Source: Oikopleura dioica
Taxonomy: Eukaryota > Animalia > Chordata
Reading direction: 5' to 3'
Assembly: GCA_907165135.1 (NCBI GenBank)
Contig: OU015566.1
Span: forward strand, 11,160,001 to 11,224,000
Length of the DNA stretch: 64,000 nt
The notes beneath the pieces were generated by a model. That model ran no database searches. It was given only the letters and a program-made list of their open reading frames with translations, and had not been told where the DNA came from. Both the position numbers and the translations under genes were made by a program. Below, piece after piece: positions 55,019 to 60,828 of this stretch (the first letter of the stretch is position 1; the number at the start of each line of letters is the position of its first letter).

Positions 55019-57538
55019 ATGAAGCTAAAGCAACGACTCGCGCTAGCCACTTTTTGTGGAATAGTATTCTTTGGTAAGTAGAAGGCGGATCTTCTACTGC
55101 CATTTCAAATTCTAGCATACAAAGCGATAGATGATCAAAGTTACATATTTGATGCTTTATTGAATACTCCTACAGCTGAAGATATTTTAAAAGAGTAGTG
55201 ATTGGAAATTTTAATGTTCTTATCATTGGATTTCTGTGTAGTACTGCATATTGGGAATTTTTGGGGCGAATAGTTAACGATTCAAATCTGGCCTTACTTA
55301 GGTGAGATATTTTTTAAATGCACGATCTTATCTCACTCATAATTGACCATGATTCTCACTCTTATTTTAAATGATCCAAATCATTATATAATGTCTATAA
55401 AATCCATCTCGGAAGAATGACAAAATCTCCCCTCGTGCAAATTCTTTTCTGACGTGTGTGTTTAGTAATCAAGCCGCTGATTGAACCCGAGGAGGGCGAG
55501 TGGCATCCACGACACCGTCGCCACCACCGCCTCGTTCACCGCGCAGATTATGACAGCTTGGCTGACAGAAAATCGCAGGGTTTTGCGGGTTCGCAGCTAC
55601 ACGGGCCGAACTTTGAGCGACACAAGAATGCTATCAGGTAAGTTTCGACCAGTCATTTTAATCTTCTATTATTTTCTCAGAGAATACCACATGGAAAACG
55701 GAGGAGGTGAAGATCAGCTTTTAAGAAGGGAACATCCTGTCGCTCCAGCCAATCCTGTCATTCCCGCCGCTCCTGTCGCCCCTGTAGCTCAAGAACCCGT
55801 ACCTTTTGTTCAGCAACAGCCGCCAAAACCCGTAGAACCGGTCGCCCCAGTCGCTCCTCAAGTTCCACTAGCTTCCGTAGCCCCGGCCGCTCCCGTTGTT
55901 CCTGCTCAAGAACAACAACCTGCAGCTATCGCTCCAGTTGTTCCTCAAATACCCCAAGAGCCAGTTGCACCGAAGCAAGAAATATCTGCAGTGTCAGTAG
56001 ATAGTAGCGACAAAAATTTCCCATCACTAAAAATAGAATCCAACGTCGACCAAGACGCGATCGACTCTGAAATCAGTCGCATCGTGTTGAACTCAGAGAA
56101 GCCTGCGATGAAAACGAACGCCTGGGAAGTGGCGAGAAATTGGATTCGCCCGCGACTCATCTGTAATTATATTTATCAATCGTAAAAATACTCAAATTTG
56201 GCATGAAATTTCTATCTTTAAAAACTTTTGGTAAATTGGATTGAAGCAATTTTCTGACTTTCCCTTTCAGATCCACAGAATCACCCCCAATTGGGATGGA
56301 TTCTCAACCATGCAGCAACTGTAAAAATCAAGAAAGCAGATATTCTGCCTAAGGGAACCCAGCTAAAGATGCTCGTGTATCTCGAAGGCAACCAAAAAGC
56401 TGTGTTCAAGCCAAAACGATACGAACGGGACTTTCAAGTGCCCGGAAAAGCCTGGAATGGATACGATAGACACAATGCCGAAATCGCTTCGTTTCATTTG
56501 GGTACGATTTCACTCTAGATCATGCAATATTTTATTTTAATCGGATTTTAGACCGAATCCTTAACTTCCGAAGAGCGCCACTTGTGACCGGGCGAGTTGT
56601 TGACTTTACCGAGGAAATAAAGCCCGTGGCGGCGGAAAGACTCTCCAATACTTTCAAAGAAGTCGAAGGAAAGTCCTGCTTCTACGGCGTTTGCTACTAC
56701 TGCAACGAAAATGAATATGCATGCGGTACGTTTTGACCTGAAAACGGCTGAATCAATCATGAAATTTTAGCTGATGAAAACGGAAAGCTCGAAGGAAGTC
56801 TTACTCTTTGGTTCCCAGAAGACAAGAAGCTCGAGAAAATCCGCCATCCTTACCAAAGAACTTATAATGACGAGAAACAAGCGAAATGGGAAACTGATGA
56901 AGAGTATTGCAACAAATATGTGAAGAAGATCGAGCCATACAATAAGGGACCTCGTCTTTTGGACATCATGGACACGTCAGTCTTCGACTTTTTCATCGGC
57001 AATGGAGACAGGTTCTTTCTTCAGAGAAGTTCTGTGATTTAACATGAAGTGTTCAGACATCACTACGAAATATTCAAAGACACGCCCGACGCAATGCTGC
57101 TCCTTTTAGATAATGCAAAGTCCTTTGGGAACGCGACTTTAGATGACTTGTCAATTCTAGCGCCGCTCCGCCAATGCTGCCTGTAAGTGCTCCCCTCACT
57201 CATTCATTTTCAATACAGTTTTTTCATTACTGTATGAAGCAGACTGGCAATCATGATTAATTAGATTGCGACAGTCTACATTCGACCGCTTGGTGTTTTT
57301 GCGAAATGGACTTTTGACGAAGTTTCTGGTCGAGGCGATGAAAACGATCCCATTGCGCCTGTACTTCATAAGTCGCATATTGAAGCGATCAATCGACGAA
57401 TGCCGATTATTTTCCAGACGATTCAATCATGTGTAAATAAGTAAGTTTCTGATAAATTCTTTACGAAACGATACTGACTGGTATTTCAGGCACGGTAAAG
57501 AAAATGTCATCATGGAAGTTTGGAAAGGGCAAGAATAA
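55019..57538 (+). CDS. FAM20B: Glycosaminoglycan xylosylkinase with a long Pro-rich stem
   Basis: MKLKQR plus TM; [62 protein letters not shown]. Confidence 0.93.
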
Positions 57539-57730
57539 ATGATGACCAGTTGCCAAATCGAACCTAATCCTGCTAGCTATCCTTCAGTTTATTCTTTTCT
57601 ATTTGATTCTGTATGTACAATTATCTAGAGTACTTTCTTGAATAGCCTTATTTAAAAAAATCCACGAATACTTATACTAATTTTATATGCAATTATCCTG
57701 TAGGATCAGGCAAAGGCGAGTGAAAAGTAT

Positions 57731-57802
57731 TGAAGAAGCCTGGGGTCGAACCAGGGACCTCCGTGTTCATGAACCGGTGTGCTACCACTGCACTACTTCT
57801 CC
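57731..57802 (-). tRNA. tRNA-like sequence in the 3' LTR (anticodon arm defective; CAT-centred loop)
   Basis: GGAGAAG/CTTCTTC acceptor stem, GTGC/GCAC D-stem, CCTGG-TTCGACC-CCAGG T-arm, TTTT 4 nt downstream. Confidence 0.75.
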
Positions 57803-58091
57803 GGGGACTTTCGAGCCAGTTACTATGCCTAAGAGGAGAGGACCTTCTCCCACAACTCCCCCTAGTAACTGCTCTAACAACTCGTCTTACATATGCCGCC
57901 TTGGGTTTTGGTTCTTTGTCTGGTGCCACGGTCCCCAACCGTTACAAGCCTACCAACCCTCCCAACCTTCAGCTTCTCCTGAGCTACTGAGTGAACCTTT
58001 GTCAATCTCAGCTTAGGGTTTGTTTTGGCTACCTAGACAACCCACTGTCTTCACCAGTTTGTAGGATCAGGCAAAGGCGAGTGAAAAGTAT

Positions 58092-58163
58092 TGAAGAAGC
58101 CTGGGGTCGAACCAGGGACCTCCGTGTTCATGAACCGGTGTGCTACCACTGCACTACTTCTCC
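58092..58163 (-). tRNA. tRNA-like sequence in the 5' LTR (identical copy)
   Basis: Identical to 57731-57802. Confidence 0.75.
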
Positions 58164-60828
58164 GGGGACTTTCGAGCCAGTTACTATGCCTAAGAGGAGA
58201 GGACCTTCTCCCACAATCCAACCACTGCCAATTATAAAAACAACAGGGTAATTAACCGACCCCGATTCTCTTCTGTACTGTCTGTCTTCTTATAAAGCTA
58301 ATCATGCTAATGTCAATATCGACACTTGTATGACCATAATATAATATATTTGCCGGCATTCGCAATAAATATTAAAGAAGCACAGGCGTCAGCACAGCGC
58401 GGACTCTGGCTTTTGCTCTCTTTCTTTTCCTTTGATAAATATTATAGAGAAAGGCCTATTTGCCGACTAAATGGAATGTTTGCAGACCGACATTGATGTT
58501 GCTGGAGTAATGCGTTTTCAGCAGTAAAGAGTCTGAGAAGAGATGGTTATTGAGCAATTACTGAAGAAAGAACTTAAGTTCAGGATGTATTGTAAAGGGG
58601 AACGACAATCGTTGATTCTAGAGCTGGCGAAACCCTTTAAAAGGAGCAGGAATAGATGAAGCTTCGCTTAGGATCATCATCTTCATTTCTTACTTCAGTT
58701 TACTTGATTAGGCCATTTATTCGACCTTTTCTAGCAAGTTCCAAGCCCGCCTAGGAATCGATGCACCTGTAGGGGTGGGTGTTTATTGTTTCTAAAAAGC
58801 GTCACCAAGTGACGGATAAAATTCTTTTGTTGAGGATTGAGGATCAGTCACGCTGTGGAGGGGCAGCAGTAGGTGCCATTCCCTTCGGGGATTCTGAAAG
58901 TCGCCCCCGCTCAGAGCCGAAACTGCGAAAGTGGCTCAGAAGGCTGCGGTCAGAGCTCCGAGATAATCCTCCCATGCCACTTGTCACTGGTGTCATCGCC
59001 GATTTCAATCGCATCCACGAATCGCATAGAGAATACTCCTACCCTTCACAGCGCACCTTTTTAACCGGAAATCAAGGAAGAGAATCGCTTGGCTGGATAC
59101 TTTTGGTCAGAGAAATAACCCGAATTCAATCCGAATTACTAAAAGATCTTTTTCTCGGTTTTTAGGTTCAATTCAATTAATTTAATTTAGGAATCTTTTA
59201 ATAAAATAAAAACGTAATTAGTGTTTAGTAATCACTAATTACGAATGCATATCTTCAGAAAATTTCGAGAATAAATTTCAATACTTCTAGATATGGTGGG
59301 GACCTGAAGAGAATGATGACTTTCTGATTTTTCGGCATCTTCAGAAAGTAAGTTAATTTTTAATCTTAAATAAAAATGAGTCATTGACATTTTAATCGCT
59401 AAATGTCTATGAGTCGGTCAAAGTCGCCAAATTTAATTGGCCCCAGCCACACCTACTCATTCCTGACCATAGGAAAAGCAAGAGAAACTCTGGTAGAAAA
59501 TCAAAAATAGTCAAAGAAGAATTATCCAGAGAAAACTGCTGATTTATTTTAGAGATCACAAAGATAGCGAAACAACTTTCCCACGTGAAAAAGTCTTAAC
59601 TTTCTTTTGAATGCCCTGGAGTTAACTTTTCGAGCTGTTAGGGTGATGGCCAAGGTCAGGGGAAGGTTGGGTTTGGGCGGGTCGTGGGTGGGTTAAGTTA
59701 ACCAAAGGTGGTGTTAATAATTCCAATTCGTGGGTGCCGACCTGTTGCGCCACCAAGTGGAGAGCCGGCAGACGGTCAGATTACGCGGCTACGTGACCAA
59801 AGACGCGGCATCAGACTGCGACGCAGAAGAGAAAGAGAAAATAAGAGAGACTCACTGAATGAGTGAACCACACAGAGACTGCTCGATTCGAAAACACCAC
59901 CTATTTAGACTAATTTTGATGTTTTTCTTGCGCTAGAAACAATTAAATTCCAATTTGAAGATTTCGTCGATAGTTTCTCTGACTCATTTGGCGCTAGAAA
60001 TTCAATTGTTTAAAAATATCTTGGTTAATTTTGATCACTCCTACAGGAAGGCGACATAAGGAGAGTTAGCTCAACCTGTTATTTAGAATTTTACTGAAAA
60101 GATCTTCTCCAAAATTGACAAGAACTTCTGGTCCAGAAGCGCTCGAAAATTCTAGAGAGAACAAAAATCCGCACTCCGTTAGAATCTGGAGCCATCGCAG
60201 ACTCGGACGCATTGTTGAAGTAATTTCTGTCAAGCTCGGGTTTATCGGTGTGCGGCGAGCGCGTCATCGACGAAAGAGATCCTCCCTGAAGACAACGAAG
60301 AGAATCGTATGAAAAAATATTGCCAGTTCTGTTTGAGGTAGTGGGTTGTATCGCTGAGGGAACTGAAACAATATTTAACCCTGGCGCTGCAACAAACTAC
60401 CCCCTACGGTGCTTGGTGGTACTCGCCGAAGGTCATGATTCGTGAATCATGGTACAAATTGTATCGTTATGATCAAAATTGGAACAGATCACTTTTAATT
60501 ACTTTCTTTCTTTATGAATACTCGGATGCTTTCACATCCTGTCAAGTGTCTCTGTAGTGGTTTTCCTACTGTTTTCGCTTCGAAATATGGGATTCTAGCG
60601 CGCGTGGTCAACGTAATTATGCCCAGTGAGCCGTGACGCGCCCAGCGCCAAGGCTACCATTCCATCATGCCTTGACAGCTCCCTTCTCTCTATTCCAGCG
60701 TTGGCGATATGGCCAACGCCGAGTTCGTACGACCAAGTCTAGGTCCGTGCCACCGATGGGTGGTGTCCTATACTATAAAAACGACTGTACCCCTATAATT
60801 TTATCATTCTTTTCCCTGACTTCACAGG

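Follow-up and report, generated by a model that had tools for sequence, protein, structure and literature searches.

A young miniature LTR retroelement of the Helenus/TRIMp3 type in Oikopleura dioica and the candidate primers of its reverse transcription

The window analysed here is a stretch of 64,000 nucleotides from Oikopleura dioica (assembly GCA_907165135.1, contig OU015566.1, positions 11,160,001 to 11,224,000), and coordinates given without a contig name are window positions. At 57699-58215, with its sense on the minus strand, lies a young non-autonomous terminal-repeat retrotransposon in miniature (TRIM) of the Helenus/TRIMp3 type, which totals 517 bp and consists of two 156-bp long terminal repeats (LTRs) and an internal domain of 205 nt. 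TRIMs have direct LTRs of about 100-300 bp with TG..CA ends, a short non-coding interior and a total length well below about 1.5 kb. In the present case short LTRs with TG..CA ends enclose a small non-coding interior with a primer binding site (PBS) as well as a polypurine tract (PPT), target site duplications (TSDs) flank the element, and copies are dispersed over the genome. An earlier note on this DNA had described a miniature LTR retroelement at 57699-58215, and the LTRs, PBS, PPT and TSD confirm this, including the end coordinate 58215. The direct repeats run from 57699 to 57855 and from 58060 to 58216 with 100% identity, the actual LTRs being 156 nt each. The features are listed below; U3, R and U5 denote the unique 3', repeated and unique 5' parts of an LTR, and their borders are putative.

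58060-58215, minus strand: 5' LTR, 156 nt, TGTGGG...CCTACA, delimited by the identical direct repeat, the TG..CA ends and an alignment of 27 LTR copies
58164-58215, minus strand: putative U3-like part of the 5' LTR
58092-58163, minus strand: tRNA-like unit of the 5' LTR, the putative R (ARAGORN; Rfam RF00005, 50.5 bits)
58060-58091, minus strand: putative trailer plus U5 of the 5' LTR
58084-58087, minus strand, with a twin at 57723-57726: TTTT run resembling an RNA polymerase III (pol III) terminator, 4 nt past the tRNA-like unit
58057-58059, minus strand: spacer AAC between the 5' LTR and the PBS
58041-58056, minus strand: PBS TGGTGAAGACAGTGGG, 16 nt, starting with TGG 3 nt past the 5' LTR
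57855-58059, minus strand: internal domain, non-coding, 205 nt, including spacer, PBS and PPT
57856-57863, minus strand: PPT AGGGGGAG, separated from the 3' LTR by one base (T)
57699-57854, minus strand: 3' LTR, 100% identical to the 5' LTR
57731-57802, minus strand: tRNA-like unit of the 3' LTR (ARAGORN; Rfam RF00005)
57695-57698, with a twin at 58216-58219: TSD, a 4-bp duplication, ATCC in plus-strand letters

Each LTR carries one tRNA-like unit of 72 nt on the element strand, which is detected by ARAGORN as well as by the Rfam model RF00005 (gathering score 29, E 2e-9). Its acceptor stem has 7 bp including one G-U, the D arm and the T arm are intact, with the A box TAGTGCAGTGG and the B box GGTTCGACCCC, and the trailer reads ATAC followed by TTTT. 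In contrast, the anticodon arm is broken: the stem is reduced to 3 bp, the loop is enlarged to 11 nt, and position 33 is a C. ARAGORN labels the unit as His with anticodon ATG, which is not a natural His anticodon. A functional tRNA would show an anticodon stem of 5 bp, a loop of 7 nt with U33 and an anticodon consistent with the tRNA body, so the unit does not qualify as a functional tRNA gene. The cloverleaf with a decayed decoding arm and a downstream TTTT, as seen in the earlier note, is found by both programs, and its copies in LTRs inflate tRNA gene predictions. In the host tRNA genes of this genome the first T run (4-8 T) lies at +2 to +4, and in where its T run sits, too, the LTR unit resembles a minimal tRNA gene. 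When the 72-mer is folded by minimum free energy, the cloverleaf does not stand out (z = -0.7), whereas the covariance model picks it out.

Closest to the LTR unit, at 80% identity, is an orphan tRNA-like gene present in a single copy (L017:1501-1572, G000:C1:10853572-10853643). It has the anticodon UGA but lacks a long variable arm, its anticodon stem is weak, and it ends in a T7 terminator. Its 3' end, UCUCUA, does not fit the PBS, and the two sequences are distinguished by a compensatory change in the D stem, from U-A to C-G. Some 620 nt downstream follows another degenerate remnant of tRNA-like sequence, with a T6 run (L017:2121-2150). The LTR module could have come from the orphan gene, or this gene could be a relic of the module.

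The search for further copies covered the genome of 64.3 Mb in 19 contigs, a chromosome-scale assembly. Full elements of 517-542 bp are present at 11 loci, and three solo LTRs were found in addition. One of the loci is a tandem array at G000:C1:2724384-2725650, in which LTR and internal domain are repeated three times before a final LTR, with a single TSD, GGTC, around the whole array; in its middle unit 13 nt are deleted from the internal domain, and the PBS is the variant TGGTGAAGATAG. Perfect 4-bp TSDs, each of a different sequence, flank 12 of the 13 independent family insertions, and 10 of 13 units have two identical LTRs. The copy in the window has a private 10-nt deletion in the U3 of both of its LTRs, as expected from reverse transcription off one template, so that the family must have moved very recently. 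Two of the solo LTRs (G000:C5:16038752 and 16057306), 18.5 kb apart, have identical 8-nt flanks and the same TSD, GTAC, and look like a single insertion that was afterwards copied by segmental duplication.

Within the LTRs, variation is unevenly distributed. Among the 27 LTR copies the U3-like part varies in 21 of 63 alignment columns, the tRNA-like unit in 1 of 73 and the trailer plus U5 in 1 of 32, and the one variable column of the tRNA-like unit comes from the insertion of one base in a single copy. Compared by column, the tRNA unit plus U5 is far less variable than U3 (Fisher p ~1e-8), and p is still about 1e-4 (an estimate) if the 10-nt deletion is taken as a single event. The U3-like part, 52-62 nt long across copies, lacks a TATA box, and AATAAA is missing from the LTR. 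T4 runs on the element's sense strand occur solely after each tRNA-like unit, whereas A4 runs are present. The intact A and B boxes, the invariant tRNA unit, the short U3 without these signals and the restriction of T4 runs to the positions behind the tRNA units suggest that the tRNA-like unit is a promoter. The same observations, namely the low variability of the tRNA unit and U5, a U3 too short for a usual pol II promoter, the missing poly(A) signal and the strand-specific scarcity of T4, make it improbable that the unit is merely a passive passenger, that is, an old insertion of a tRNA-derived short interspersed element (SINE) in both LTRs of an element transcribed by pol II or by read-through from a neighbour, like ordinary TRIMs. 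In favour of such a passenger, the origin of Helenus proposed by Kojima is a SINE that inserted into an LTR (PMC10886601), and as the family is young, the conservation may partly reflect short time.

The transcript data bear on the same question. Three poly(A)-selected (oligo-dT) RNA-seq runs with the same species label yielded no reads on the element, which is weak evidence against a passenger that depends on pol II; pol III products would escape poly(A)-selected libraries. Within the window, the reads of these runs cover only 57497-57538, a stretch of 42 nt in the last exon of the neighbouring gene, where they show fixed differences (57502 A>G) and continue at either end into sequence unlike the window, and these runs may therefore come from another, diverged lineage. 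A marine metatranscriptome contig of 247 nt (run X1) covers window positions 57895-58121 with 5 substitutions and a 4-nt insertion relative to the element, and shows that the element family exists in wild populations. In this contig 30 nt of the 3' part of the tRNA-like unit are unchanged, and the anticodon-arm sequence differs. It continues without a break over the TTTT run, as a passenger would allow, and possibly represents element RNA that crosses the T4 run, though it may derive from DNA.

The PBS, TGGTGAAGACAGTGGG, can be compared with the reverse complement of the tRNA-like 3' end after addition of CCA, TGGTGAAGAAGCCTGGGG. They agree over 9 contiguous complementary nt, 6 genome-encoded nt plus the CCA, as the earlier note had correctly counted. 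From this match follows the idea of a self-primed Helenus element, in which pol III would transcribe the LTR tRNA-like RNA, RNase P and RNase Z would trim it and CCA would be added, whereupon this RNA would prime reverse transcription in particles borrowed from Tor elements, the Ty3/gypsy elements of Oikopleura. Its 3' end, UCUUCACCA, would anneal to the first 9 nt of the PBS, and the module would be promoter and primer gene in one. I regard this as a serious rival to priming by a host tRNA, possible but somewhat doubtful. The 9 end-anchored contiguous nt are the best match among the tRNA-like sequences tested, and the predicted duplex with the PBS is the most stable (-19.6 kcal/mol, with -18.8 for host tRNA-Leu(CAG), -17.3 for Arg-TCG and -33.6 for a perfect complement); of 2000 trials with shuffled 3' ends, 0.5% reach the energy of the LTR unit. 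Those arms that processing and CCA addition require, the acceptor and the T arm, are kept while the anticodon arm is broken, and the compensatory D-stem change relative to L017 also speaks for self-priming.

However, only 6 of the matching nt are encoded, the host tRNA-Leu(CAG) comes close in predicted energy, and transcription, processing and CCA addition are predictions. The chance of at least 9 contiguous matches is about 0.002 per family, as estimated from the sampled host tRNAs, and as more than 200 Helenus families have been checked without such a match (PMC10886601), one match is unremarkable by itself. The 9-nt helix in the PBS and the acceptor end are both invariant across all genomic copies, and hence the copies offer no covariation that could speak for pairing. 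Within the family position 10, the first beyond the helix, is the sole variable site of the PBS, where one array unit has C>T, and the metatranscriptome contig has C>A, which lengthens the match to the LTR unit to 10 nt; these two events are only suggestive of pairing with the LTR unit. A longer tRNA complement, TGGTGAAGAAGCC, is found in none of the 13 element PBSs. Self-priming in cis, as in Tf1, finds no counterpart here, as the predicted RNA 5' end, GGAGAAGUAGUG, shows no complementarity with the PBS, and without CCA the match in cis amounts to 6 nt only (UCUUCA).

For a host tRNA that fits the PBS, the tRNA set of the genome was surveyed by sequence pattern, the pattern searches requiring GTTCRA and C61, and 63 of 3446 candidates were scored in an Rfam tRNA scan. 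The 13-mer CCCACTGTCTTCA occurs 12 times in the genome and each time in the element's PBS, so that no host tRNA ends in this way. Among the 56 one-mismatch matches to this 13-mer, none overlaps a tRNA gene listed in this Rfam scan, and the 19 that were read are neither in a tRNA nor beside an LTR end nor a PBS. A search anchored in the T loop (GTTCRANNC) gave 42 matches for ..TCTTCA and 20 for ..VCTTCA, which are the 27 LTR copies and 35 other sites; ARAGORN finds a tRNA in none of these 35, all of which were fetched. Thus, in the T-loop-anchored pattern searches of the assembly, no canonical tRNA genes ending in ..CTTCA appeared besides the LTR units, and tRNA-like genes with a canonical T loop and an end in ..TCTTCA or ..CTTCA are the 27 LTR copies only, which is in line with self-priming. 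Allowing up to 3 mismatches over the T loop and the 13-mer brought up a single real host tRNA, tRNA-Leu(CAG), with the 3' end CCCACUCUUGUCA; 15 new loci from this search were fetched and are not tRNAs, including the initiator-like GATCAAAACCCAGCGTCTTCA with three copies. With a whole-tRNA pattern including acceptor pairing, the recognisable tRNAs among the 100 of 163 matches listed are element copies only. A metagenome scan for element variants gave one unrelated tRNA-Pro in a tRNA cluster.

In end-anchored contiguous pairing, the 17 distinct host tRNA sequences sampled reach at most 6 nt with the PBS (Leu-CAG and Arg-TCG), the LTR unit 9. Over its whole length the PBS matches tRNA-Leu(CAG) (L089) at 13 of 16 positions plus one G-U. 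Also, no other LTR element in the genome has TGGTGAAGA adjoining an LTR end. The PBS is therefore, as judged from sequence, apparently an orphan, since the searches gave no full match to an encoded tRNA and since, anchored at the end, the product of the element itself matches best. A PBS that matches both a host tRNA and a co-resident autonomous element, which is a usual property of the Helenus class although not part of its definition, is not found here. The uniqueness of the PBS complement in the genome and its absence from other LTR elements are compatible with self-priming, the host tRNAs having been surveyed by pattern. The proposal of the earlier note that the LTR may supply its own primer has in this respect come through its own test, as no host tRNA ends in CCCACTGTCTTCA; the alternative offered there, that PBS and LTR tRNA descend from one host tRNA, loses ground, as no such host tRNA was found in the assembly.

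The PBS does resemble the full 16-nt complement of a canonical tRNA end, with the T-stem CCCAC, a 7-nt acceptor strand, A73 and CCA, and this complement has no counterpart in the assembly. A different primer altogether could account for it, either a host tRNA that is absent from or masked in the assembly, or a tRNA whose T loop is atypical, or a site inside a tRNA, of the kind used by copia, Ty5 and fungal Helenus elements; the candidate RNA would end in ..CUGUCUUCACCA. The demand for GTTCRA and C61 in the pattern searches leaves room for such a tRNA. Nevertheless I think it unlikely, because the exact 13-mer is confined to the element family, the one-mismatch matches that were read (19 of 56) gave no tRNA and no LTR-adjacent site, the T-loop-anchored searches with up to 3 mismatches yielded tRNA-Leu(CAG) as the sole real tRNA, and tRNA genes are usually multi-copy, which makes their complete loss from a chromosome-scale assembly unlikely.

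The autonomous elements of the genome provide another view on the primer, and Tor-like elements were read at their junctions. One pattern match (L088) resembles the 3' end of a genomic tRNA-Leu with CCA, and on the opposite strand it is the PBS of an LTR element of 3.2 kb (L117:1719-4874, G000:C1:16555518-16558673) with 254-nt LTRs, a 5-bp TSD, GGTGG, and an open reading frame (ORF) of 818 amino acids without a Pfam match. Its PBS is perfectly complementary to the tRNA-Leu(CAG) 3' end over 26 nt, including the CCA and reaching into the T loop, so that the sequence of the primer tRNA seems to have been copied into the element. This copy shows that tRNA-Leu(CAG) serves as a primer in this genome. 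Two apparently autonomous Tor-like relatives of 6.6 kb (L123:2836-9454 and L124:2899-9525, on G000:C2 and C4) have LTRs that are 100% identical, a gag-like and a pol ORF, and TSDs of 5 bp. In their PBS, TGGTGACAA, complementarity to tRNA-Leu(CAG) is limited to 9 nt; this site has a duplex energy of a predicted -13.1 kcal/mol and continues with unrelated sequence; their PPT and LTR start, GGGGAGCTGTGAG, are common to at least 11 sites in the genome.

Two further Tor-like elements come from public assemblies. The first (L135:2876-9353, on a contig of ENA ERZ21867824) has LTRs of about 625 nt, a 4-bp TSD, TTAT, a PPT, GGGGGAG, like that of the TRIM, and the PBS TGGTGTCAAGCG, and it has no nucleotide match in this genome. 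With the second (L138) it shares the 9-nt TGGTGTCAA, beyond which the two diverge. Leu-type PBSs are thus present in the three Tor-like families examined (L123/L124, and L135 and L138 by PBS similarity). As the resident family and both environmental relatives have PBSs of exactly 9 nt, this appears to be the normal working length for the group, which fits the 9 nt that the TRIM's own tRNA-like end would offer. It could be objected that a self-primed PBS should be rewritten from the primer and show TGGTGAAGAAGCC. I have dropped this objection, since both autonomous Tor-like copies keep non-tRNA sequence past the 9-nt PBS, and since Ty1, according to the title of a study cited in PMC5371799, does not inherit primer sequence; an unconverted PBS is no objection to self-priming.

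A search for a partner element, using PPT plus LTR start, PBS plus LTR end, and local alignment, showed motifs in common only with the Leu-primed Tor-like family with 5-bp TSDs. This family and the TRIM have nothing in common beyond GGGGAG and the TG..CA motifs, and as a partner it (L123/L124) is excluded by its 5-bp TSD and the lack of wider similarity.

The reading that I favour, with moderate confidence, is that of a Helenus element promoted by pol III, which obtains its proteins from Tor elements and its primer from the host, most likely tRNA-Leu(CAG). The tRNA-like unit would be an internal pol III promoter with its terminator and would thereby set R, and leaky read-through of the 5' T4 run would give a genomic RNA of the order tRNA-U5-PBS-internal-PPT-U3-tRNA. 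A resident Tor element would lend Gag, reverse transcriptase and an integrase that leaves TSDs of 4 bp, and the host tRNA, imperfectly annealed to the 16-nt PBS, would prime the minus strand. The 9-nt match to the element's own tRNA-like end would then be a coincidence or a leftover of common tRNA features (CCA, A73, C72). A host primer is suggested by the 13/16 pairing of tRNA-Leu(CAG), with a predicted energy of -18.8 kcal/mol versus -13.1 for the Tor-like PBS, by the Leu-type PBSs of the Tor-like families, by the Leu-CAG copy in L117 and by the lack of complementarity between LTR tRNA and PBS in Kojima's Helenus families.

Several observations weigh against this reading. The end-anchored helix with tRNA-Leu(CAG) has only 6 bp before an A-G mismatch, whereas the Tor-like families have 9 contiguous nt, and the pattern survey of the assembly revealed no host tRNA with at least 8 contiguous nt complementary to the PBS. 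Unrelated host tRNAs, such as Arg-TCG, also match 12-13 of the 16 PBS positions, so that the similarity to Leu is weak evidence. The autonomous family that uses Leu has 5-bp and not 4-bp TSDs, and no partner with 4-bp TSDs was found. Transcription by pol III is only inferred, and the T4 run directly after the 5' tRNA unit must be read through; finally, the poly(A)-selected RNA-seq runs, possibly of another lineage, contained no element reads.

If self-priming were nevertheless true, it would explain why the arms for processing were kept and the decoding arm was lost, and a Helenus-type TRIM would be independent of host tRNAs for priming. No earlier LTR retroelement would have had a separate gene for a tRNA-type primer of its own, and this would be a new answer to the problem of priming reverse transcription: a parasite's parasite with promoter and primer of its own, in need of nothing but the proteins of a partner. 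As Oikopleura dioica is culturable and has short generations, the idea of a self-supplied primer is directly testable. Apart from priming, the element shows that the very compact genome of Oikopleura tolerates a non-autonomous LTR element that is currently active and has a pol III unit at its core.

TRIMs with a tRNA sequence in the LTRs were named Helenus by Kojima (2024, Biology 13:119; PMC10886601) and were united with Cassandra, which bears 5S sequences, and Ajax as TRIMp3, and the element in the window matches this published class; the earlier interpretation is supported in part. Within each LTR of Helenus a box A (TRGCY..YGG) and a box B (GGTTC) are conserved, and animal families have 4-bp TSDs and PBSs in common with Gypsy elements, with frequent arrays and solo LTRs (PMC10886601). 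The tRNA part is regarded there as a pol III promoter and not as a working tRNA, pol III transcription being unproven in that case too; use of the LTR tRNA as a primer was considered, but no complementarity to the PBS was seen in any of the more than 200 families (PMC10886601). The element described here has every defining Helenus feature that was tested, and it resembles Helenus in being short and non-coding, with a tRNA-derived sequence bearing A and B boxes in each LTR, a PBS, a PPT, 4-bp TSDs, solo LTRs and an array. It differs in that the PBS of the described families fits a host tRNA and not the LTR tRNA, which by contiguous pairing is reversed here, and in that no autonomous element with a similar PBS was found in the genome. 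The chordate hosts listed for Helenus are coelacanth, sturgeon and paddlefish, and ostariophysan fishes, with no tunicate among them (PMC10886601); the present element is a new member, which extends this class described in 2024 to the tunicates.

Cassandra in plants and Ajax in nemerteans are likewise TRIMs whose LTRs contain a pol III promoter that originated from the gene of a small RNA (PMC10886601), but their module stems from 5S rRNA instead of tRNA, and therefore it cannot give a CCA-tailed 3' end. SINE2 elements share the tRNA-derived head with A and B boxes, the degenerate anticodon arm and the status of a non-autonomous, pol III-driven retroelement; unlike the present element, SINEs lack LTRs, a PBS and a PPT, depend on long interspersed elements (LINEs) for mobilisation, and have TSDs of variable length. 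The Tor elements (Henriet et al. 2015; 4- or 5-bp TSDs, PMC4402516) live in the same host and are the obvious source of proteins for the element. They have TG..CA LTRs, TSDs of such lengths and a PPT, GGGGAG, in common with it, and the Tor copies examined have 9-nt PBSs; on the other hand, they are autonomous (gag, pol and often env) and transcribed by pol II from the LTR, and the similarity in nucleotides is limited to short motifs. For priming other than by the 3' end of a whole host tRNA, precedents exist in the half-tRNA priming of copia and Ty5 and in Tf1 of Schizosaccharomyces pombe, which supplies its own primer according to work cited in PMC5371799. In Tf1, however, the 5' end of the mRNA folds onto the PBS and is cut, whereas here the candidate would be a separate tRNA-like transcript that needs the addition of CCA.

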